Shown here: in pieces, positions 15,615 to 55,822 of the stretch
Position numbering within the stretch: the first letter of the stretch is position 1
Layout: the number at the start of each line of letters is the position of its first letter
Sequence record: LC680884.1
Direction: 5' to 3' (one strand)
Length of the DNA: 64,000 bases
Program-made: the position numbers and the translations under genes
Notes under the pieces: model-generated
The model's database searches: none
Seen by the model: only the letters and a program-made list of their open reading frames with translations
What the model was told of the DNA's origin: nothing

Positions 15615-18600
15615 ATGAAAATAGATACATTAAATATAGATAAATTTATTACTTCTCATGCATGTAAAGAAGTAACAAATCCGGTTTACTTTAATATGGG
15701 AAATATACCAACTGAAGATGGATTATTTTCAACTAGTATTTTTGGTTATCCGGGAAGTAAAGAAAGAAAAATAATTTTTGGTTATATAGACTTAAAGAGA
15801 AAATTTCTCCATCCAGTAATTTATAAGCTTCTAACCTCTATGGATCGAAAAATTGCAGATTGTCTATCTGGAAAAAAATATTTTAAAGTTGAGGGCGGTA
15901 GGTTAGTTGAAGATAAAGATAATGGTAAAACTGGAGTTACCTATTTTTATACTATTTATGACCAATTAAAATTTAGTAATACTGGAACTGATAGAAGAAC
16001 AAGTTATCTTACATTATTAAATAAACTTGGTAAGGATGATATATTTATTGACAAATATTTAGTGATTCCGGCATTTTATAGAGATTATAATCCCTCAAAA
16101 TCTTCTAATGATACGATTAAAGCTGTTGATGAAGTGAATGACAAATATGCTAAATTAATTAGGTATAGCCAATCAATTTCTAAGGGTGAAGATTATGATT
16201 TTATGGGAGTAATAACAGAATCATCTATTCAGACTCTTTTATATGATATCTATGACTATTTTACATCCTCTTTAGCTGGTAAAAATGGTATGTTCCATCA
16301 AAACTCTTTAGGTAAATCTGTTGATTATGCAACTCGTAGTGTAATCTCAGCACCACGATTTAAGTCAAATAGCTGGAAGGATAACCCTATTAGATTTGGA
16401 TGGACTGGTATTCCCCTATCACAATTAGTGGTAGAATTTTATCCATTCTTTCTTAAATATATCCAAGATTATATTCTTGAACGTGAATCAGAACTTAGTA
16501 AATTTAAGCATAATGGAAAAGAGATAACTATCAGTAATATAAGAGAGCAGTTCTCTGAAGAAGCAGTAAAAAAGATGATCTCATTATACATTAAGTCTAT
16601 TGAAAGTCGTTTTAATAGTTTAATGATTAAAGATGATAAGGGGAATGAAATTCCTATTCCATTATATAGAGAAGAACTAGGGCGTAACTTTACATTAACT
16701 GATATTCTATTCATTGCGGCAGTTGATATTACCAAAGATAAACATGTATATGTAACAAGGTATCCAATAGAGCAGTATCGTATGTGACGTTCTCCTATAA
16801 GCATTTAATGTGAAATGGAGTAGATTTTATAATCTAAACTGTAAATGAGAACAAGTAAAAGATATGACCATTTTCATTGAAGACTTGTCGCTAATACTCC
16901 TACATGCATCTATTTTAAACTATATAAAATATTTGTATGAAGTTAGGTGAAGTCATCTGAATATTAGTAGTACTATAATACTAATAGATAGGGTGGGCGG
17001 TGCTATAATATGATGAGGAACACGAACCTTTTTATACTATATAAATTCAGGGTTTAGTAATACGGTACTGGTGAACGACCTGATTGTAAAGTGTGGTACA
17101 ATAGAAGTTTATATAGGGCAGAAGGCATCTAAGTTATAGCTATACTATCATTTACGGAACGTCAGAGATTCTATATAAGAGAAATTATAGTTGATACTCT
17201 TATATAGAAAGTCAGCAGACCATAGTAGTTATGAAGATGGGTAACTCCATTGGAGCGAAGGGTCATAGTCAGTTTAATAAAAATAATCGAACAATCACAA
17301 AACATAATAATAAATAGTTATGTGGAGTGATTTTAATGAGAAAATTGGATAATACTTCATTTGATTTAAGACTAAATCAAATACTAAAAGGTTACAAACG
17401 AATTGGTGAATATATTAATTCTAAAACAAAAATTTTAATATTACATGAAATTTGTAATAAAGAATTTGAGGCAAGACCTTGTAACTTATTACAGGGTTAT
17501 GGATGTCCTCATTGTAATTCAAAAGAAAAGTTAACTACAGAAAAATTTATCAATAAGGTTAAGGAATTAGTAAAAGATGAATATACTGTTTTGTCTAATT
17601 ATAAAAATTATCATTCTAAGGTAACAATGCGTCATAATAAATGTAAATTCATTTATGAAGTCAAAGCAGGAAATTTTACATCTCTAGGGAGACGTTGTCC
17701 TAACTGTTCAGGACTTATTAAGAAAAATAAAGAATATGTTCAAGAACAGTTAGACAAAATAAATCCTAATGAGTATAAAGTGATTGGTGAGTATATAAAT
17801 AATGTAACTCCATTAGAAATAATACATTTAGAGTGTAATACTATTAATAAATTTTCATTAAAAAATATTACATCTAATAAATTTTCATGTAAAAACTGTA
17901 AAATGAGTAGTGGGGAATTATTAATAAAAAATATTTTAAATAATATGGGAACAGAATATACCTATCAAAAAACTTTTAAAGAATGTAAAGATAGAAAACC
18001 CTTACCTTTTGATTTTTTTGTAGAGGAATTTAATGCTATAATAGAATATGATGGTAGACAACATTTTCTTCCTATCTTTGGTAACGATGAAAATGACCGT
18101 ATTAAAAAATTAGAATTAATACAAAAACATGATAATATTAAAAATGATTTTTGTAAGAAATATAATTTACCAATTCTTAGAATTAAATATGATACACCAA
18201 TCGATAGTATACCAATTCTTATTAAAAAATTTTTATTAAATTGATGGAACGCCTTATGCGATGAAAGTCGCACGTAGGGTGTGAAGTGGGGGAAAAAGAG
18301 GAGATAAAATCAAATCTTTACCTATCACTATAGAATATTTATCCAAGTAAAATAAGAATTCTTTCAACAAAGGAAACACGACCTCAAAAGCTGGAAGATA
18401 GATACTTACCTGATTATCCTGTTATATACCCTGACTATCCCGCAGAGGATGAACTTTTTGTTGATACAGTAATTCCTTATAATGGTTATTTAAAGGCTTT
18501 AGGCGGAGACTACGATAAAAATTAATATTATTTCTTTTTAAGGGAATACAGTGTCAAATAAACAAATAATTATTAATTATTTGGAGGTATTAATGTATGC

Positions 18601-20568
18601 CACATAAAAAGACACTGGACGAATTCAAAGAAGAAGTTAAATTACTAACTAACAATACCTATACAGTTTTATCCAATGAATATATTAACAATAAGACTAA
18701 AATCAAATTAAGGCATGAATTATGTGGAAATATATATGAGGTTAGACCTGATGTATTTCATAATGGTAGAAGATGTCCTCAGTGCGCTGATATTAATAAA
18801 GGTAAATCAAGATTAAAAAGCAATGATGAGTTTAAGAAGGAATTAAAAGAAAAGACTAATGGAAGACTTATAAGTCTTGAGAAATATATCAATATCGATA
18901 CCAAAATACTTTTCAGATGTAATGACTGTAATTATGAATGGAAGACTACTCCTTATTATGCTTTGAAAAATAGATGTCCTCAATGTTCTGGTAAAAGAAG
19001 ACTAACTACTGATGAGGTTAAAAGAAAAATTAGCTTAGTTACAAATAATGAGTATTCATTATTAGGTGAATATCGTAATAATAAAACGAAGATTAGATTG
19101 TTACATCATAGTTGTAATAAGGAGTATGAAGTTACAATTAAAAACTTTGATAATGGAAATAGATGTCCATATTGTGCATTTAAAAGTTCATCAAAAATGG
19201 AAAAAGAACTATCTTCTTTTATTAAAGGATTAGTTGTAGATAAAGTCATATGTAATGACAGGAAATTACTTGAAGGTAAAGAGATTGATATATTTATTCC
19301 TTCCAAAAAAATTGCTTTTGAATTTAATGGTTTATATTGGCATTCAGAGCAAATGGGGAAGAAAAGAAACTATCATTTAGAAAAATTAGAAAAATGTAAT
19401 AGTAAAGGGATTAGACTAATTCAAATTTTTGAAGACGAATGGGTTAACAAACCTCTCATAGTAAAAGAAAAAATAAAACACCTACTAAAATTAAATAATT
19501 CTACTAAAATATACGCTAGAAATTGTTATGTAGAAGTAATTGATAACAATTTTAAAAATGAATTCCTAGAAAGAAATCACATTCAGGGAAAAGATTTGTC
19601 ATCAATTAAATTAGGCTTATGGCTTCCAAAAGAAGATGGCGATGAACTTGTAGCGGTAATGACTTTTAGTAAACTTAGAAAAAGCCTAGGTAGAAATAGT
19701 GCTGATAATATTTTTGAACTATCAAGATTCGCTACCGATATGGACTATAGAGTAATAGGTGCTTTTAGTAAACTTCTCAAATACTTCGAGAGAAATTATG
19801 AGTGGAAAGAATTAATAACCTATGCAGATAAACGCTGGTCAGATGGCAATGTTTATATCAATAATAAATTTGAATTAAGTCATATTAGTAAACCCAACTA
19901 TTGGTATGTTAACGTTGAAAAAACTCAACGATTCCATAGATTTAATTATAGAAAGTCTAATCTCAAAAAGAAATTTCCAAAATTATATAGTGATGATAGT
20001 ACTGAATTTGAAATCATGGATAAAACTAGATTTAAAAGAATATGGGATTGTGGTAATTTAGTATTTACCTATAAAAGATAATAATCTACTGTCGTAGTAA
20101 AACCCTTTTAACTGCTGGAAAATCCTATATGGACAATCAGCATCCAAGCATCTTTAATTCATTTAAAGATGAAGGTTCAACGACTATCGAAACCACTCTA
20201 ACAGATCGTTGTGATAACGCTAGTTAGAAGGAAGGGAGTAGAGTACAGCCAAGCGGTAGAGGTATTCCGTAATAAGGTTATAATTCCTCTTTAAATGGAA
20301 ACGGAGGGCACAATTATATTGTGAAGATATAGTCTCATCTCTATAGTAATATAGAGCAGTTCATAAGAGAACGCAGTAGATGTAGCGAATCTACTGGAAG
20401 ATTTTGGGTGATACAGTATCTCTACGTGGAGTATTTAGTAAAGAAGCTAATGAAGAAGCAGAACGATTAATATGGGAAAAGAAGAATATGTTAGACCAAA
20501 TGGGACGAAACTCTCGTCAAATTGGGAATGAAGCAATACAAGCAATTTATTCTCTAACTAGAGAATAA
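15615..20568 (+). CDS. rpoC: Virion RNA polymerase beta-prime subunit, N-terminal half; spliced join(15615..16779,18332..18516,20407..20568), 503 aa
   Basis: Exon 1 carries DGLFSTSIFG, GKSVDYATRSVIS and VTRYP. Splicing restores YPIEQY-Q-NIYPSKI and the catalytic motif LGGDYD|GDTV (NADFDGD equivalent). The frame is continuous across both junctions. Confidence 0.93.
17301..17312 (+). promoter_or_regulatory. Intron-internal late promoter for the group II endonuclease
   Basis: AACA-TAATAA-TA, 24 nt upstream of the ATG at 17336. Confidence 0.65.
17336..18244 (+). CDS. Intron-encoded homing endonuclease: zinc-ribbon repeats plus EDxHD/Vsr-like PD-(D/E)xK domain
   Basis: Three H-x2-C..CPxC-type modules, then SSGELLI..LPFDFF..IIEYDGRQH. 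SD TGGAG. No RT motifs. Confidence 0.88.
   Translation: MRKLDNTSFDLRLNQILKGYKRIGEYINSKTKILILHEICNKEFEARPCNLLQGYGCPHCNSKEKLTTEKFINKVKELVKDEYTVLSNYKNYHSKVTMRHNKCKFIYEVKAGNFTSLGRRCPNCSGLIKKNKEYVQEQLDKINPNEYKVIGEYINNVTPLEIIHLECNTINKFSLKNITSNKFSCKNCKMSSGELLIKNILNNMGTEYTYQKTFKECKDRKPLPFDFFVEEFNAIIEYDGRQHFLPIFGNDENDRIKKLELIQKHDNIKNDFCKKYNLPILRIKYDTPIDSIPILIKKFLLN
18561..18572 (+). promoter_or_regulatory. Intron-internal late promoter for the group I endonuclease
   Basis: AACA-AATAAT-TA upstream of SD GGAGG and the ATG at 18597. Confidence 0.7.
18597..20081 (+). CDS. Intron-encoded endonuclease: zinc-ribbon repeats, EDxHD-like nuclease, C-terminal Hef/Mom-like GNAT-type domain
   Basis: Three CPxC modules; SKME..EIDIFI..IAFEFNGLYWH; C-terminal YAR..FLERNHIQG..ELSRF..GAFSKLLKYF..TYADKRWSDG..RIWDCG. 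Confidence 0.85.
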   Translation: MPHKKTLDEFKEEVKLLTNNTYTVLSNEYINNKTKIKLRHELCGNIYEVRPDVFHNGRRCPQCADINKGKSRLKSNDEFKKELKEKTNGRLISLEKYINIDTKILFRCNDCNYEWKTTPYYALKNRCPQCSGKRRLTTDEVKRKISLVTNNEYSLLGEYRNNKTKIRLLHHSCNKEYEVTIKNFDNGNRCPYCAFKSSSKMEKELSSFIKGLVVDKVICNDRKLLEGKEIDIFIPSKKIAFEFNGLYWHSEQMGKKRNYHLEKLEKCNSKGIRLIQIFEDEWVNKPLIVKEKIKHLLKLNNSTKIYARNCYVEVIDNNFKNEFLERNHIQGKDLSSIKLGLWLPKEDGDELVAVMTFSKLRKSLGRNSADNIFELSRFATDMDYRVIGAFSKLLKYFERNYEWKELITYADKRWSDGNVYINNKFELSHISKPNYWYVNVEKTQRFHRFNYRKSNLKKKFPKLYSDDSTEFEIMDKTRFKRIWDCGNLVFTYKR

Positions 20569-40665: not shown

Positions 40666-43600
40666 TTATCTATTTAAACTAGTAATAAAATTTAGGCTTT
40701 TCATTCTTTTTTGCTTTCTAATATTATTATCATTCTCATTATGATCTTCAAAAAATCTACTTTCATTCTTATACATTTCTAATAATATTTCACTCTGTGA
40801 TTTTTCACCACTATTAATTTTAGACAATGCATGAATGTTTCTAGCTCTATCTTTATTATTTTCTTCATTCTCATTATTATCGCCATCACTGATGACTTTA
40901 ACAAATTTATTTATATTATTTCCATATAAGAAAGCATAGCATGCCACTAGCCATGAGAATAATGTATCATCATGACCTCCATCCCTATGCTCAATCTTTC
41001 CTTTCTTATTTCTTTCTAATGTTCTTAATTCTTCAAAAATATATTTACTTGTAAACACATATGGAGTATCATTAACTGCATTACTAAGAATCTCATTGAT
41101 CATTATATCCCGACTATCTTTACTAGTAGTAACCCCATAAACTCTTGTTTTAGTCTTAACTGTCTTTTTAGATGATCTTTTTGGATCATCAACTTTCTTT
41201 TCTCCTTTTACTTCTCTAACTTCATAATATAAGTTATTAGCTACTTCTGAACGTAGTAGATCTTGTATTAAAGAGATACCTAAGTTATTTCGTTCTGGAA
41301 TAATGACACCATTAGGACAAAATTCTAATACTAGGTGTATAACCAAATCTTTTAAATCAGGTAAAGATATATTATTACTTCTAAATACTGCTTTTTGAAC
41401 CATATCTTTAGGATCAATAATAGATATCACTGTAAAATCTCGATTCAAACCTGCTCCAATATCTATACCGATTAGCCATGATTTTTTAAATATATTTCGC
41501 ATTTCACTGAAAATTTCAAATTTATATCTTTTCATTACATAAAACTTACCAATAGGTTCACCTGCATGTTGTCCAATTTCTGCTAATTGTTCCTCTGAAA
41601 AAGGCGAAGTATCGTTAGCCAATGTCCATTCCAATAATATTTCACGTTTAATTTTTAATAAGTCATTATTGAGCTGACGACATTGTTTTTGATACCATTT
41701 CTCATCATGTCCTAACTCTTTATAATTAAATACTAAATAAACAAAGTCATTTCGAGAGTTCTGTTCAATATATTTTTTAATTTCATCAATATCCCAATCA
41801 TACCAAGCTTCATCAAATGGACATGCATCATCAATCATACCCTTACAATATTTACCCATTTCTGTATCAAGATCATTCATTTATCTTCCATTAGATTCGC
41901 TACATCTAATGCGTTCTCTTATGAACTGCTCCATGTTACCATGAAGATGAGACTATATCTTCATCTCATTGAGATGCTTCCCTTTTCCAACCTCAATCAC
42001 TTAGGTTGTACTCTACTCCCTTCCTTCTAACTAGCGTTATCACAACGATCTGTTAGAGTGGTTTCGATAGTCGTTGAACCTTCATTGTTATAAACAACAA
42101 TGCTTGGATGCTGATTGTCCATATAGGATTTTCCAGCAATTAAGGAAGATTCAATTACATTATTACTAATGTATTGCCCAATAGTTTAGGAGTTGTTGTA
42201 ATTAATTTTCCGTAAGGAGTACCATTACGCTGTGCGGCTTCTGATGCTTTTGATAGTGCTGGTGCAGCACTCATAATTACCTTCCATTAGATTCGCTACG
42301 TCTAATGCGTTCTCTTATGAACTGCTCTATGTTTCCATAGAGATGAGACTATATCTTCACTCCAGTATTTAATACCTTCATCATGCTCTCCTTTTCCTTT
42401 CGCTTGAAAGTACTCTACTCAATATAATACAAATTATATTTTTCGATAGTCGTTGAACCTTCATTGTTATTTATAACAATGCTTGGATGCTGATTGTCCA
42501 TATATCCTTTAGATTATTACACTTTGGTACTAAAGACTTTAGGAGTTTCCAGCAGTTAAGAGAGTTTTAATACGCCAGTTACACCAGTTTAGCGTATACC
42601 GTATCATTATATTTTAAAAATGCAAATTCATCATCATTTATCTTCATATAGATTCGCTACGCCTATACCGTTCTCTTATGAACTGCTCCATGTTACCATG
42701 AAGATGAGACTATATCTTCATCTCATTGAGATGCCTTCCATTTCCAACTCCAATCGCTTGAGTTGTACTCTACTCCCTTATCCTTATCTAGCATTATCAC
42801 AACGATCTGATAAGTCGGTTTCGATAGTCGTTGAACCTTCATTGTTATTTATATAACAATGCTTGGATGCTGATTGTCCTAAAAGGATGTTCCAGCAGTT
42901 AAGAAGGATTCATTATAATATCACTATTATAATGGGCTAAAAATTTAACCATATAATTGGTACTGTACAACCACGCAAGTTACCTTCATATAGGTTCGCT
43001 ACGCCTATACCGTTCTCTTATGAACTGCTCTATGTTACCATAGAGATGAGACTATATCTTCACCTAAATACGGCGCTCCCCTTTTTGAATACCTATAGCT
43101 TGTATTCTACTCTACTCCCTTATCCCTATCTAGCGTTATCACAACGATCTGATAAGTCGGTTTCGATAGTCGTTGAACTTTACTTTTAAAAGTCTTAGCT
43201 TCTGATTATCCTTGGAAGGACGTTCCAGAAATTAAAGGAGTTTATACTGAGCCATAGTTAGTTAACCCAGTTTGTCAGCGTCAGTAACAGTCCTAGCAGT
43301 ACTCATTGCATCAATTTTATTATTATTCTTTGCACATGAAATTTGAGCTAAGTTATTTGTATCTTTTTTAGGATCTAAATGCGTTTTTAAATAACTTGGT
43401 AATAATTCTGTTATATCATTGAAACGTTTAATATTTAATTGGGAATCGGCGTATTGTTTATTACTAAAAATCATATGAGTATTTTTGGTAGCCCAATGAT
43501 ATACCCATATATATCGACATACAGCCCCAATTGTTTTTCCATTCTGACGAGGTAGTATCTCAATCATATCAATATTATTTTCCATAAGAAACATTTGACC

Positions 43601-43867
43601 AAGATTAGCTCTGTGTAGCATGAAATGAATAGAACCACCCGATTCAGGAATTCGCACTACTTCCCTCAAGAAATACCAAAAGTTAGTCATTACTTCAACC
43701 TGTATTCTTACCTTTTGTTCATCAGTTAAATTTGGATCATATGGATCAACACCTTGTAATGTTTCATCATTCAATTTTAAAAAGAATTTATTATTTTTTA
43801 TACCTTGATCTTTTAGAAACTTCCAGATCTTAATAAAACTTAGGTTTCTAGTAGAATAATCATACAT
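40666..43867 (-). CDS. terL: Terminase large subunit; spliced complement(join(40666..41877,42188..42271,42591..42634,42948..42975,43265..43867)), 656 aa
   Basis: Walker A PRQNGKT. Splicing restores KLG|RGCTVPIIW-Y-DEFAF (Walker B), VYA|SAAPAL and TTTP|NDLD. RNase H nuclease IGIDIGAG..DDTLFS. The frame is continuous over all four junctions. Confidence 0.94.
41878..42187 (-). mobile_element. Group IA intron, ORF-less (terL intron 4, 310 nt)
   Basis: Exon ends CCT, intron ends AAATG. P, Q, R (GTTCAACGACTA) and S (AAGATATAGTCT) present. Confidence 0.92.
42272..42590 (-). mobile_element. Group IA intron, ORF-less (terL intron 3, 319 nt)
   Basis: IGS GGCGTAT pairs with the exon end ATACGCT; the preceding ACT pairs with the 3' exon AGT; R and S conserved. 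Confidence 0.93.
42635..42947 (-). mobile_element. Group IA intron, ORF-less (terL intron 2, 313 nt), inside the Walker B strand
   Basis: TGGT|..AAATG|ATGATGAA restores W-Y-D-E; R and S conserved. Confidence 0.93.
42976..43264 (-). mobile_element. Group IA intron, ORF-less (terL intron 1, 289 nt)
   Basis: Starts with TAA. IGS GCTCAGT pairs with ACTGGGT, and ACTATG pairs with the 3' exon CGTGGT; R and S conserved. Confidence 0.94.
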
Positions 43868-43893
43868 TTAATCAACCTCCTATTATGATATAT

Positions 43894-43905
43894 TAATAGA
43901 ATGTT
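43894..43905 (-). promoter_or_regulatory. Late promoter for terL
   Basis: AACA-TTCTAT-TA. Confidence 0.75.
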
Positions 43906-43929
43906 TGTACCGTATTAAAATATAAAACT

Positions 43930-43942
43930 AAGTATATATTAT
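43930..43942 (+). promoter_or_regulatory. Early-type promoter motif
   Basis: AAGTATATATTAT; the same 13-mer occurs on the minus strand at 21979..21991. Confidence 0.65.
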
Positions 43943-43973
43943 ATATGAGAAAGAGTGAAAGGAGAGAAAGTCA

Positions 43974-44687
43974 TTGGTACGAAAAGAGAGAAGAAATATT
44001 GACAAGGAAATAATAGAATACTTTGGAATCAATTATGAATTAGAGGATGTAATTAAATTCTTTAAAAGAAACAAAGATGTGATTACGAATAATGAATTAC
44101 AGACAGTAATTATAAAATTTGGTGGAGATAGAATACTTTCTAATGAAGAAGTAGGACAGATCGTAAATCTATCATCAGCAAGAGTAAATCAGTTAGTATG
44201 GACAGCATTTGAAAAATGTAAAAATGAAGAAATACAAGAAGGTAAAAGAAAGAAAAATTTAACATATCAAATTGATAAAGATTTACTAGATTTAAGAACG
44301 TTTAACTTATTAAGACGGAATGGTTTAGATAATCTAAGTAAATTAATAGATTATATGAGTAAGAAAAGATTAAAGAGTATTGATAAACTTGGTGATCTTT
44401 CTGAAAAAATGATATTAACTGCTTTAGAAACAATGGGAATATCCGATAAGATAATTACTGAATATAAGAAAACTCATGGAATAGAAGGATTTGAGTATAA
44501 ATTATATGGTGCTTTTATAACATTTGAAAATAGTGATAACTCCATTTTGGATTATTTTGCTATACCTGAAAATGAAGAAACTGAGAGTTATATAAGAAAC
44601 CAATTTCCAGATAAAAATATAACTAGTATTCAATATTCCCCTGTTAGTGTAAATGGATTTAGAATCCTACTAACTAAACTAACATAA
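43974..44687 (+). CDS. Sigma70 region 4-like HTH fused to an RNAP alpha-CTD-like domain
   Basis: ITNNELQTVIIKFGGDRILSNEEVGQIVNLSSARVNQLVWTAFEK (sigma4-like) and LDLRTFNLLRRNGLDNLSKL..IDKLGDLSEKMILTALETMGI (alpha-CTD-like). Confidence 0.8.
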   Translation: MVRKERRNIDKEIIEYFGINYELEDVIKFFKRNKDVITNNELQTVIIKFGGDRILSNEEVGQIVNLSSARVNQLVWTAFEKCKNEEIQEGKRKKNLTYQIDKDLLDLRTFNLLRRNGLDNLSKLIDYMSKKRLKSIDKLGDLSEKMILTALETMGISDKIITEYKKTHGIEGFEYKLYGAFITFENSDNSILDYFAIPENEETESYIRNQFPDKNITSIQYSPVSVNGFRILLTKLT

Positions 44688-44820
44688 GACATCTTAGAGA
44701 TTCACCTGCATAAACTAGTTCAGGTGAATTTTTTTTTTCTTTTTTGAGTTTCAAGATGAAGTTTTCTGGTTAAAATAAAACATCTAGAAATACCAACTCT
44801 CACTCAAGGAGGAATTTGAA

Positions 44821-45009
44821 ATGAGCAAAGCGGAGGTCAAAGAACTACTTGATGGTATTGATGAAATTAGTTTTGATTTTGTAGAATTAGATGATGATAG
44901 CAATAGCGAATTTATCGGAGAACTAAATGATATGGAAGATGAATTGTATGATATTGGACCATTTGCTACTTATATAGTTGATAATCTTGGACAATTAATA
45001 ACTGAATAG
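44821..45009 (+). CDS. Small highly acidic protein (62 aa)
   Basis: SD AAGGAGG; 19 D/E versus 2 K. Confidence 0.75.
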   Translation: MSKAEVKELLDGIDEISFDFVELDDDSNSEFIGELNDMEDELYDIGPFATYIVDNLGQLITE

Positions 45010-45013
45010 TTAC

Positions 45014-45048
45014 AATAAAGAAGGACAGATACTTTGCCCTTCTTTATT
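45014..45048. terminator. Bidirectional terminator
   Basis: AATAAAGAAGG..CCTTCTTTATT between convergent genes. Confidence 0.7.
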
Positions 45049-46015
45049 TTTTTAATAAAAGAGTATTATCCTCACCAAAATCTTTATTCTGCTTATTATT
45101 TAAATCAATTAGTACTTTCTTAATCAACTCTTTCTCTAATTCTGTTTCAGCAGTTTGATATTCTTTCTTGAGAACATCAATAACTCCTTTTCTTCTTAAA
45201 TAATAGAAGTTTAAATTTTTCCTTATCCAATTAATAAATACATTCGTACTAATTTTATGAGTTGAGTTAGTATGATTTTGAAGCATTGAGAGTGTCTGAT
45301 ACATCTCATCAGCATATCCATATTTAACTGCTAAACTATCACTATATATTTCTCTCTCTGAATAATATTTATTTGCAACAAAATCCATAAGAGAACTTGT
45401 ACCCATTACAATCATAACCAAACCTACAAAACCTATAATTGGGCTCATTACAGTTAATGGAACTGATAAAGTTCTCTTACCCATTCTAACGGTCATAGAG
45501 AGTACTGCCATAGCTAATCCCATGCCATAACCAATATTAGCCATATTCTTAGAATTTTCTTCATCCCTAAGAGCATTTTGAACTTTAACATATACTTTAT
45601 GTCCAATTTCATGAATTAAAATTGCAGTTAGCATTCTAGCTGTTGCTCCTTCTCTTTTAAATAGGTTTAAAAGAGATCCTTCAATTTCAATTGATACATT
45701 ATGACAATCGATTAACTGATAACCTTTTTTCTTAGATTCAATGGCTTCTAAATATTGTCCTTTCATTTCTTCATAAGAAGGGAAAATTCTCATACCATAA
45801 CTTACTTTATTACTCAATGTTGGATGAAGAAAAATTTTACAATCTATATTAAAAGTACTCTTCAAGAGTTTTTCTATTTTTGATATATTCCTTTTAAAAC
45901 CAGCATCTTTAAAATTCTTCGATGGTAGTAGATTAAGTATTTCTTCAAAGCAGTCATCTAATTGATCCAATTCTGTTCTATGATAAATTTTTTCTAGTAA
46001 AATAGTATCTACCAT
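45044..46015 (-). CDS. Zincin (HExxH) metallopeptidase-like protein downstream of the capsid gene
   Basis: AILIHEIGH, then a hydrophobic segment, then EREIYSDSLAVKYGY (M48-like ExxAD pattern). SD AGAGGTG gives a start at 46015. Confidence 0.7.
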   Translation of the reverse strand: MVDTILLEKIYHRTELDQLDDCFEEILNLLPSKNFKDAGFKRNISKIEKLLKSTFNIDCKIFLHPTLSNKVSYGMRIFPSYEEMKGQYLEAIESKKKGYQLIDCHNVSIEIEGSLLNLFKREGATARMLTAILIHEIGHKVYVKVQNALRDEENSKNMANIGYGMGLAMAVLSMTVRMGKRTLSVPLTVMSPIIGFVGLVMIVMGTSSLMDFVANKYYSEREIYSDSLAVKYGYADEMYQTLSMLQNHTNSTHKISTNVFINWIRKNLNFYYLRRKGVIDVLKKEYQTAETELEKELIKKVLIDLNNKQNKDFGEDNTLLLKK

Positions 46016-51586: not shown

Positions 51587-52297
51587 TCACCTAGTATATT
51601 CCCAAATAACATAGTCCAGTAATCTTGGACTCAGATTTGGATATTCTTTTGATAGTATTAATGATGCCTCTTTAAGTAATATCTGTGATTCATCTATATT
51701 AATCTTTCTTTGAAGGATCTCTTCAAGAAAGCGAATTATCATTCTATCTGGTTTTATTTTATCTTCTTCACCAGAAAGCATAAGGAAGTATAATAACGAA
51801 ACCCCTTTTCCTTGACCCTTAATACGTCTAATATCTTTTTCAAATTCCTTATTACCATATATGTTTTTTACATCTTGAAAATAATTAATATTATACTTAT
51901 TTAGAACTTTACAAAACTCATAAACAGCTTCAGATTTTAATATTCCATTAACTGCTGAAGTTCGTTGTCTATTATTAAAGATTTTTTGAGTGTAAAAATC
52001 TACCCCTATTTTTTCATAAGAATCAATAAAACTTTTTACAGATAACTGATTAGATGTACTAGGGAATGAACTACTTTCTCTTAATGGGTTAATATTAAAA
52101 TAAGTGCAATAACGCTTAATTACATTCTTTACACTAGTATAATTAGAATTAATAGAAAAGATAGAATCAATTACACATAAAGGAAGACTGGAATAATAAT
52201 ATTCATCTGGGAGCTTAGCATCTTTTAGATTAAGTAATTCTTTGCATTTTTCAACCAATATAATTTTATCTTCTTTTTTAATTTCTGTTAATTTCAT
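51587..52297 (-). CDS. HhH-GPD superfamily DNA glycosylase-like protein
   Basis: YSSLPLCVIDSIFSI; HhH segment IRRIKGQGKGVSLLYFLML; conserved-Asp segment IKPDRMIIRFL; C-terminal PRLLDYVIW. Confidence 0.75.
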   Translation of the reverse strand: MKLTEIKKEDKIILVEKCKELLNLKDAKLPDEYYYSSLPLCVIDSIFSINSNYTSVKNVIKRYCTYFNINPLRESSSFPSTSNQLSVKSFIDSYEKIGVDFYTQKIFNNRQRTSAVNGILKSEAVYEFCKVLNKYNINYFQDVKNIYGNKEFEKDIRRIKGQGKGVSLLYFLMLSGEEDKIKPDRMIIRFLEEILQRKINIDESQILLKEASLILSKEYPNLSPRLLDYVIWEYTR

Positions 52298-53038: not shown

Positions 53039-53122
53039 ATATTATATTCCTCCTCTTTTAAATAGTCTGGTATTACAGGAATATAATATATGCTTGAAAA
53101 ATATTTTTAATACGGTAAATAA

Positions 53123-55567: not shown

Positions 55568-55822
55568 TTATAACATTTTAATTTTATTTTCTCCATTACT
55601 GTCTTGAATTACTAAAGCCCAAGGTTTATATTCTGGAGCATCTGAAGTTAATAGCATTACATTTTCATCTGTACTTTCATCATAAGCAGTATGAACTAAA
55701 ATATCACTTTCTGGTTTATTCCCAATTACTTCCTCTACTTCTTCTGGTAACATTAGAATTGATTCTTGAATCACTAGTTGTTTTCCTGTTTCTTTTTCAA
55801 TGATGTCAGATAAATTTGTCAT
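55568..55822 (-). CDS. ugi: Uracil-DNA glycosylase inhibitor (DNA mimic)
   Basis: Recognised as the 84-aa PBS1/PBS2 Ugi, MTNLSDIIEKETGKQLVIQESILML..NGENKIKML; SD AGGAGG. Confidence 0.99.
   Translation of the reverse strand: MTNLSDIIEKETGKQLVIQESILMLPEEVEEVIGNKPESDILVHTAYDESTDENVMLLTSDAPEYKPWALVIQDSNGENKIKML

Follow-up and report, generated by a model that had tools for sequence, protein, structure and literature searches.

The gene considered here raises the question of what a jumbo phage, from a group whose RNA polymerases (RNAPs) are held to work without alpha or sigma subunits, would do with a protein that resembles parts of both. Reviews (to 2026) and primary papers describe RNAP-encoding jumbo phages as lacking alpha and sigma homologues as well as recognisable initiation factors, and the absence of an alpha or sigma subunit from AR9-type RNAPs, which was a premise of the original prediction for this gene, is stated in the reviews. 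The gene lies in a window of 64,000 nucleotides (the whole stretch of DNA analysed, from sequence record LC680884.1), to which coordinates refer unless another sequence is named:

43974..44687, + strand: gp6 coding sequence (equivalent to AR9 gp120/g120), 237 aa, 27.7 kDa, pI 6.7

The coding sequence starts with a TTG codon, and its product is 100% identical to that of gene 6 of PBS1 (MF360957) and 99.6% identical to AR9 g120; the window is DNA of the giant Bacillus phage PBS1, and over positions 43000-46000 it shares 100% identity with MF360957 and 99.3% with AR9. The product is named 'RNA polymerase subunit A' in MF360957, 'RNA polymerase' in RefSeq and PHROG 28674, and 'hypothetical protein' in AR9 (KU878088), where an early promoter is annotated just 5' of g120. 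The alpha-CTD portion described below has already been hinted at in one GenBank record, via the product name only. A literature search found no paper describing g120/gp6, and a PADLOC scan returned nothing meaningful. A 140-aa fragment with 99% identity to gp6 (P0003) is deposited as a B. subtilis protein on a 1,261-bp contig, and probably stems from a PBS1-like phage present in the B. subtilis culture or assembly.

The protein is divided into the following domains, the first two of which are connected by a flexible linker (residues 89-99):

44073..44237, + strand: sigma70-family region 4-like helix-turn-helix (HTH) domain, residues 34-88 (Pfam, profile against PDB, Foldseek)
44271..44444, + strand: RNAP alpha-CTD-like helix-hairpin-helix (HhH) domain, residues 100-157 (Pfam, NCBIfam, profile, hhalign, model)
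44445..44684, + strand: orphan C-terminal helix plus beta-beta-alpha-beta domain, residues 158-237 (AlphaFold2 model; conserved in the orthologue P0004)

Alone, gp6 matches Pfam Sigma70_r4 under the gathering score (E 0.011, 15.7 bits, residues 55-83), and its distant orthologue P0004 passes (42.8 bits, GA 24.1). When a family profile built from gp6, the Goe21 allele and P0004 was compared with all PDB sequences, the 60 listed of 81 matches were sigma70-family region 4 or RNAP alpha; among the former, S. aureus sigmaA matched best (E 3.7e-6, residues 34-83), and Firmicute sigmaA region 4 (S. aureus, B. subtilis) supplied the best solved-structure matches of this part of gp6. An AlphaFold2 model computed with a 12-row alignment (mean pLDDT 76.7; confident blocks at residues 30-90, 100-155 and 180-220) superposes on sigmaA region 4, with Foldseek matching its first block to 4g6d_A, 1ku7_A, 1ku3 and 1rio_H (probability 0.98-1.00) at a target TM of 0.72-0.79 and an rmsd of 1.1-2.7 Å. 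The predicted alignment of residues of about 37-83 with sigma70 region 4 is thus upheld by the profile, by the orthologue's Pfam match and by the modelled fold, and the replacement of the sigma70 sequence TRERIRQ by SSARVNQ, also part of the original prediction, is read at the same helix residues in our alignments.

Compared with Sigma70_r4 (PF04545; PDB 4g6d/4g8x, 7ckq_F, 1ku7), gp6 has the same helical HTH fold with a conserved hydrophobic core and keeps the equivalents of R586, Q589, K597 and R599, whereas those of R584, E585, R588, K593 and R596 are replaced. The recognition helix reads S67-S68-A69-R70-V71-N72-Q73 against T-R-E-R-I-R-Q in sigma70, so that the -35 readout positions (R584, E585, R586, R588, Q589) are occupied by S68, A69, R70, N72 and Q73, with two of the five kept, and the domain as a whole carries a net charge of -2. 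Neither gp6 nor P0004 has a Pfam match to Sigma70_r2 or Sigma70_r3, and only 33 residues precede region 4. Unlike sigma70 sigma factors, gp6 is therefore a protein without regions 1-3, which means that it cannot be a sigma factor, and its HTH is joined C-terminally to an alpha-CTD.

The evidence for this second domain is of a similar kind. The match of gp6 alone to Pfam RNA_pol_A_CTD is sub-threshold (E 0.017, residues 91-152), as is, by a narrow margin, that of P0004 to the Pfam alpha-CTD (21.7 bits, threshold 23.8); a single-sequence PDB search places RNAP alpha CTDs on top (E 0.03-1), and NCBIfam rpoA matches residues 78-156 with an E of 6e-6. The best RNAP alpha match of the family profile in the PDB has an E of 3.8e-5 (residues 95-157), hhalign aligns the gp6 domain with cellular alpha-CTD copies at a probability of 95.6% (E 1e-8), and Foldseek matches the model, which has a pLDDT of 83-90 over residues 100-155, to RNAP alpha chains (probability 0.84-0.89). 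Relative to the bacterial alpha CTD (PF03118; PDB 3gfk_B, 1z3e_B, 8syi_A), gp6 spans the whole domain. In E. coli alpha numbering, gp6 retains the equivalents of R265, N268, G296 and S299 (R108, N111, G140 and S143), whereas those of N294 and K298 are K138 and L142. Of the DNA-binding '265 determinant' of alpha (R265, N268, N294, G296, K298, S299), gp6 consequently keeps four of six residues and P0004, by alignment, three of six. The predicted alpha-CTD alignment over residues of about 98-156, with its four retained residues, finds profile, hhalign and alignment in agreement.

It is at this point that the database names have to be weighed. GenBank MF360957, RefSeq and PHROG 28674 would make gp6 the alpha subunit of a phage RNA polymerase, a view that rests on those names and on local similarity to rpoA models. 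However, the rpoA models match gp6 at positions 216-293 of 298 only (25.7 bits, cutoff 227.8), that is, over their last ~80 positions; the N-terminal dimerisation/assembly domain of bacterial alpha has no Pfam match in gp6, where the CTD is instead placed after sigma4 and before the orphan domain; and phage RNAPs assemble without alpha. An alpha-subunit role is, in our estimation, next to impossible. Since it lacks both the N-terminal domain of alpha and regions 1-3 of sigma, gp6 is, as judged from its predicted domain content, no alpha subunit and equally no sigma factor, and because it is not an alpha subunit the label 'RNA polymerase subunit A' is misleading. At the level of sequence, gp6 is an exception to the rule that these phages have no alpha or sigma homologue, one that has been masked by the 'hypothetical' and 'RNA polymerase subunit A' labels.

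The C-terminal domain, which like the cellular fusion relatives and the GenBank label did not feature in the original prediction, is modelled with confidence (pLDDT 84-92 over residues 180-220), and residues 158-237 have no match in Pfam or among PDB sequences. Lrp/AsnC, Y-family polymerases and the phage p56 UDG inhibitor were considered as structural relatives and rejected (Foldseek probability 0.35 or less). The model has a pTM of 0.40 and inter-domain geometry of low confidence, and the Foldseek E-values for the whole model, which consists of three domains with flexible linkers, are poor, only domain-level matches being meaningful. AlphaFold from the gp6 sequence alone gave a pLDDT of 41.5 and an unusable model.

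Searched exhaustively with phmmer, 1.84 billion representative proteins yielded one distant full-length orthologue, P0004 (232 aa, 27% identity to gp6, E 5e-14), and word-index homologue searches together with an IMG/VR scan found no gp6 homologue beyond the PBS1 group and P0004. The orthologous family is made up of the PBS1/AR9/Internexus/Goe21 group and P0004, and the orthologue alignment has a depth of three lineages. P0004 is encoded on L003 (Logan SRR12632060_494, metagenomic, 260,603 bp), a PBS1-like jumbo phage whose major capsid protein and terminase exon are 77% and 83% identical to those of PBS1 and which has the same early-promoter consensus as PBS1 and a UDI-family (Ugi-like) gene. 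The location of the orthologue in the L003 genome differs from that in PBS1; a 236-aa ORF at the L003 orthologue's place (51587-52297, - strand) was examined as a gp6 paralogue and rejected (hhalign probability 0.5%, no Pfam match).

Beyond the orthologues, the nearest relatives of gp6 among the 1.84 billion representatives are not RpoD and not RpoA; the best matches are P0005 and two proteins with alpha-CTDs as their only recognised domains. P0005, which is matched by the sigma4 part of gp6 (phmmer E 2.2e-5), is a cellular protein with Sigma70_r4 and two alpha-CTD copies. A search from P0005 yielded eight more clusters, from uncultured Clostridia, in which sigma4 is followed by one to three alpha-CTDs. 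Genes of this kind, annotated as hypothetical, are found at:

L004, 8001-9296: Clostridia fusion gene, Sigma70_r4 then one to three alpha-CTDs
L006, 8001-8795: the same arrangement
L008, 8001-10019: the same arrangement

The chromosomal neighbours of the cellular fusions are housekeeping genes, namely ftsY/ffh, aspS/glmU and nrdD/addB (three loci), one of the genes lying between ftsY and ylxM-ffh, and the R and N at the R108 and N111 positions are kept in 6/7 and 7/7 cellular alpha-CTD copies, respectively. Because Clostridia chromosomes also carry proteins with sigma4 followed by alpha-CTDs, the predicted fusion is a rare but recurrent, uncharacterised architecture. The sigma4 and alpha-CTD domains are known; the fusion architecture, the phage context and the promoter subclass described below are new.

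HTH and HhH folds are common across DNA transactions, and gp6 could accordingly be a DNA-binding protein with a non-transcriptional job, such as genome organisation, replication/recombination or uracil-DNA protection. Weak HHH_5 matches among the relatives of gp6 and a C-terminal domain without an assigned function are compatible with such a role, but the 60 listed of 81 PDB matches belong to sigma region 4 and the RNAP alpha CTD, not to generic HhH or HTH families, and we regard it as quite improbable.

The expression signals of the gene are as follows:

43930..43942, + strand: early (virion RNAP) promoter 13-mer AAGTATATATTAT, one mismatch to AAATATATATTAT-(6N)-G, annotated in AR9 KU878088
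43947, + strand: transcription start (AR9 coordinate 94722, Table S2 of PMC5312081, converted through L001), giving a 27-nt leader
43958..43966, + strand: ribosome-binding site AAAGGAGAG, 7 nt before the TTG, read from the sequence
44697..44738, + strand: terminator-like hairpin followed by T10 (MFE -15.4 kcal/mol, z -4.5, 0/200 shuffles as stable)

Another G, at 43949, agrees with the 6-nt spacing of the early-promoter consensus. The window contains 8 matches to the AR9-type early 13-mer against 0.6 expected, while Sigma70-type promoter matches around the gp6 gene are not in excess over shuffles, and a perfect early promoter lies 23 nt ahead of the ATG of the L003 orthologue. The one-mismatch 13-mer, the AR9 annotation, the published start site and the 5-min transcript establish that an early-type promoter precedes the gene, as had been predicted, and the gp6 gene is a self-contained cassette amid late structural genes. 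Directly downstream of the gp6 terminator lies a 62-aa acidic ORF (44821-45009, + strand; AR9 g119), with 77, 330 and 10,727 FPKM at 5, 20 and 40 min; as these kinetics are opposite to those of g120, g119 is a separately driven, strong late gene.

In published AR9 data, the g120 transcript is present at 5 min by primer extension, the mRNA amounts to 313, 237 and 167 FPKM at 5, 20 and 40 min, and g120 is among the eight 'pre-early' genes. At 5 min its mRNA is about ten times as abundant as the mRNAs of the subunits of the non-virion RNAP (nvRNAP), and it later falls while those rise. Gp6/gp120 would be a very early, non-virion regulatory protein and a subunit of neither phage RNA polymerase, its absence from the virion being read from AR9 annotation labels only.

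These kinetics bear on the idea, in outline already part of the original prediction, that gp6 is a dissociable accessory factor, the sigma4-like domain of which docks on the flap of the virion or non-virion RNAP so that an enzyme without alpha and sigma gains upstream-promoter contacts, with gp6 acting as activator or class-switch factor. Jumbo-phage RNAPs do have a flap-like region and no alpha or sigma, some early promoters form a subclass with an element precisely at the position that a -35 box would take (see below), and T4 gp33 shows that a sigma4-like phage factor can stand alone. Set against this, the AR9 nvRNAP, both as purified and in its solved structures, consists of five subunits other than gp6, among which gp226 confers specificity and contacts the upstream DNA; new protein synthesis is dispensable for early transcription; and AR9 annotates other virion components as 'virion protein' but g120 as hypothetical. 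Given also that g120 mRNA declines as the nvRNAP mRNAs increase and that gp6 is diverging much more rapidly than the late machinery, which is conserved, an accessory role is distinctly unlikely.

Also significant is a sequence element that precedes the early promoter of gp6 and recurs before others:

43910..43919, + strand: upstream element CCGTATTAAA, exact match, 10 bp before the 13-mer, at about -39 to -30 from the consensus +1
53106-53115, - strand: CCGTATTAAA before the early promoter of the PBS1 g108 homologue, with the same 10-bp spacing
L003, 9939-9948, + strand: CCGTATTAAA before the early promoter of the gp6 orthologue, with the same 10-bp gap
L003, 19160-19169, - strand: CCGTATTAAA before a second early promoter, with the same 10-bp gap

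The element sits where a -35 box would be expected. A further exact copy, at 18097, has no early promoter behind it and is considered unrelated. The element, or a one- or two-base variant of it, is found at the same position in 9/41 published AR9 early promoters (g047, g048, g069, g108, g120, g169, g190, g234 and g253), as assigned by eye from the published table (PMC5312081, Table S2), and it is not mentioned in the source paper. From the published FPKM values, the median ratio of first-gene expression at 5 min to that at 20 min is 1.13 for promoters with the element (n=9) and 0.21 for those without (n=28; Mann-Whitney p = 8e-5); between 5 and 20 min the element-bearing promoters are flat or falling, whereas the others rise about five-fold. 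The CCGTATTAAA subclass matches the 'pre-early' kinetic class. Promoter strength or RNA stability could explain this correlation equally well, and the source paper of the 41 promoters ascribed the pre-early pattern to the stability of the RNA or the affinity of the promoter. Three promoters that combine the element with an imperfect 13-mer, P120 included, are active before any gp120 can exist, whereas P057, which has an imperfect 13-mer and no element, is silent; because of this difference the element is probably read first by the virion RNAP.

The gene is a hotspot of divergence. Gp6 is the most diverged of the 14 genes common to the L003 locus and the window (26.5% identity, compared with 36% for the Ugi-like gene and 45-83% for the remainder). 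Next in divergence comes the 84-aa ORF at 55568-55822 (- strand), which has 36% identity to the L003 gene of the UDI family (uracil-DNA glycosylase inhibitor). Between the otherwise near-identical phages PBS1 and Goe21, the divergence is concentrated in an island:

44079..44618, no strand: PBS1-Goe21 divergence island, 80-87% nt identity, with flanks at 97-100%

The dS value between the two phages is 0.40 in the gp6 gene and 0.03-0.07 in its neighbours, and the raised dS indicates that a divergent allele was swapped in by recombination. The dN/dS ratio is 0.21 overall, 0.15 in the sigma4 part, 0.10 in the alpha-CTD and 0.50 in the C-terminal domain; the low overall value implies that the protein is functional, and those of the first two domains imply that both are under purifying selection. 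Despite an overall identity of 27%, R108, N111, G140, R70 and Q73 are invariant between gp6 and P0004. The recognition helix is SSARVNQ in gp6 and TYTRIRQ in P0004, yet the upstream element is identical in both phages.

Goe21 is unlike PBS1 in the terminase-intron stretch, the alignment breaking down below 43268, and the terminase large-subunit gene just upstream of gp6 contains four group I introns (Rfam RF00028, 72-94 bits). Introns in the window are located at:

41929-42198, 42325-42605, 42686-42956 and 43028-43274, - strand: group I introns in the terminase gene (RF00028)
20045-20356, + strand: a further group I intron
16834-17007 and 18247-18331, + strand: the two ends of a group II intron (RF02004 and RF00029)

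Rapid divergence is what might be expected if gp6 were a protein decoy or competitor (the main functional idea of the original prediction), a look-alike that binds host docking proteins (candidates being the beta flap tip, Spo0A- or Spx-type regulators, or sigma4 and alpha-CTD themselves) and so disables host initiation early. Gp6 diverges faster than every other gene shared with L003, including the Ugi-like binder of a host protein, in the manner of an arms race, and a divergent allele has been exchanged between near-identical phages; its timing is pre-early, as for Ugi. The best structural match of the sigma4 part is a Firmicute sigmaA region 4, and the domain, which is mildly acidic, no longer has arginines used for DNA readout. 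Phages are, moreover, known to target the sigma4/alpha-CTD junction, as do T4 AsiA, T4 Alt and phage G1 gp67 (PDB 4g6d), which counts for a decoy. On the other hand, the DNA-contact residues R265 and N268 of alpha are invariant in gp6. The tyrosine of B. subtilis alpha that is presumably the Spx contact corresponds to F in gp6 and C in P0004, and the position is thus not conserved; sigmaA has no known anti-sigma in B. subtilis; and the existence of cellular fusion homologues makes an origin as a decoy less natural. DNA binding is somewhat favoured over a pure protein decoy because the minor-groove residues R108 and N111 are invariant and the closest relatives are cellular proteins with multiple alpha-CTDs, and we regard the decoy as rather unlikely.

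The explanation ranked first, held tentatively and at somewhat less than even confidence, is that gp6/gp120 acts early, as a regulator, by occupying promoter DNA. Both modules are readers of DNA in their parent proteins, and the order of sigma4 followed by alpha-CTD matches their arrangement on -35/UP promoters. Gp6 would in this case unite on one polypeptide copies of both modules by which bacteria recognise the upstream half of a promoter: a sigmaA region-4 HTH for the -35 major groove, a flexible linker of ~11 residues and an alpha-CTD for the A/T-rich minor groove just upstream, while the orphan C-terminal domain may serve oligomerisation or partner binding. Starting from the domain architecture, early expression and conservation pattern documented above, we infer that gp6 would be found on duplex DNA at promoter-upstream regions, in competition with an RNA polymerase. 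One candidate target is the phage's own pre-early CCGTATTAAA promoters, that of gp6 included, in which case the class would shut itself off in a self-limiting manner; another is the host sigmaA promoters, where gp6 may form part of host shut-off.

A DNA-occupying regulator is ranked first because the domain order and the short linker fit adjacent major- and minor-groove sites and R108/N111 are invariant. It is further favoured by the element in the -35 position and with identical spacing that the promoters of gp6 and its orthologue share, by the flat or falling kinetics of the element-bearing promoters together with high g120 mRNA at 5 min, and by purifying selection on sigma4 and alpha-CTD. 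Counting against it are the loss of the R584, E585 and R588 equivalents along with the net charge of -2, the loss of the N294/K298 equivalents in the alpha-CTD, the difference between the gp6 and P0004 recognition helices in the face of an identical element, and the firing of element-bearing promoters before gp120 is made. The more specific proposal that gp6 is a covalent sigma4·alpha-CTD mimic working as a trans-acting switch, either as a competitor of the virion RNAP at CCGTATTAAA promoters or as a plug of host -35/UP sites or partners, is considered possible, if doubtful.

If the switch reading is true, a phage lineage believed to have no transcription factor derived from sigma or alpha would have its first in gp6. 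Gp6 may offer a handle on the sub-programming and shut-off of early (virion-RNAP) transcription in AR9/PBS1, and also on the shut-down of host transcripts by a phage that is independent of host RNAP, while the -35-positioned element that marks the pre-early class provides a second testable lead. The cellular sigma4-alpha-CTD proteins, for their part, suggest by their predicted domains an unstudied family of promoter-region binders.

Among known systems, the Clostridia proteins with sigma4 and one to three alpha-CTDs (P0005, P0010-P0016, P0087) share the domain order of gp6. In contrast to gp6, which has one alpha-CTD and an orphan domain of 80 residues, the Clostridia fusions are chromosomal, carry 1-3 alpha-CTD copies on long linkers and are without the C-terminal beta domain. 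Like gp6, T4 gp33, a stand-alone sigma4-like co-activator on the beta flap, is a phage-encoded substitute for sigma region 4 and not a sigma factor. However, gp33 has no alpha-CTD and acts with the host RNAP, which T4 needs, whereas AR9 is independent of host RNAP; the gp33 family was not listed for gp6 in PHROG and Pfam scans, and no sequence similarity between the two was found. A functional analogy is possible with T4 AsiA, T4 Alt/ModA and phage G1 gp67, early disablers of the host's upstream-promoter recognition, the difference being that AsiA, Alt/ModA and gp67 bind or modify sigma4 or the alpha-CTD, whereas gp6, as far as is known, resembles those modules themselves instead.
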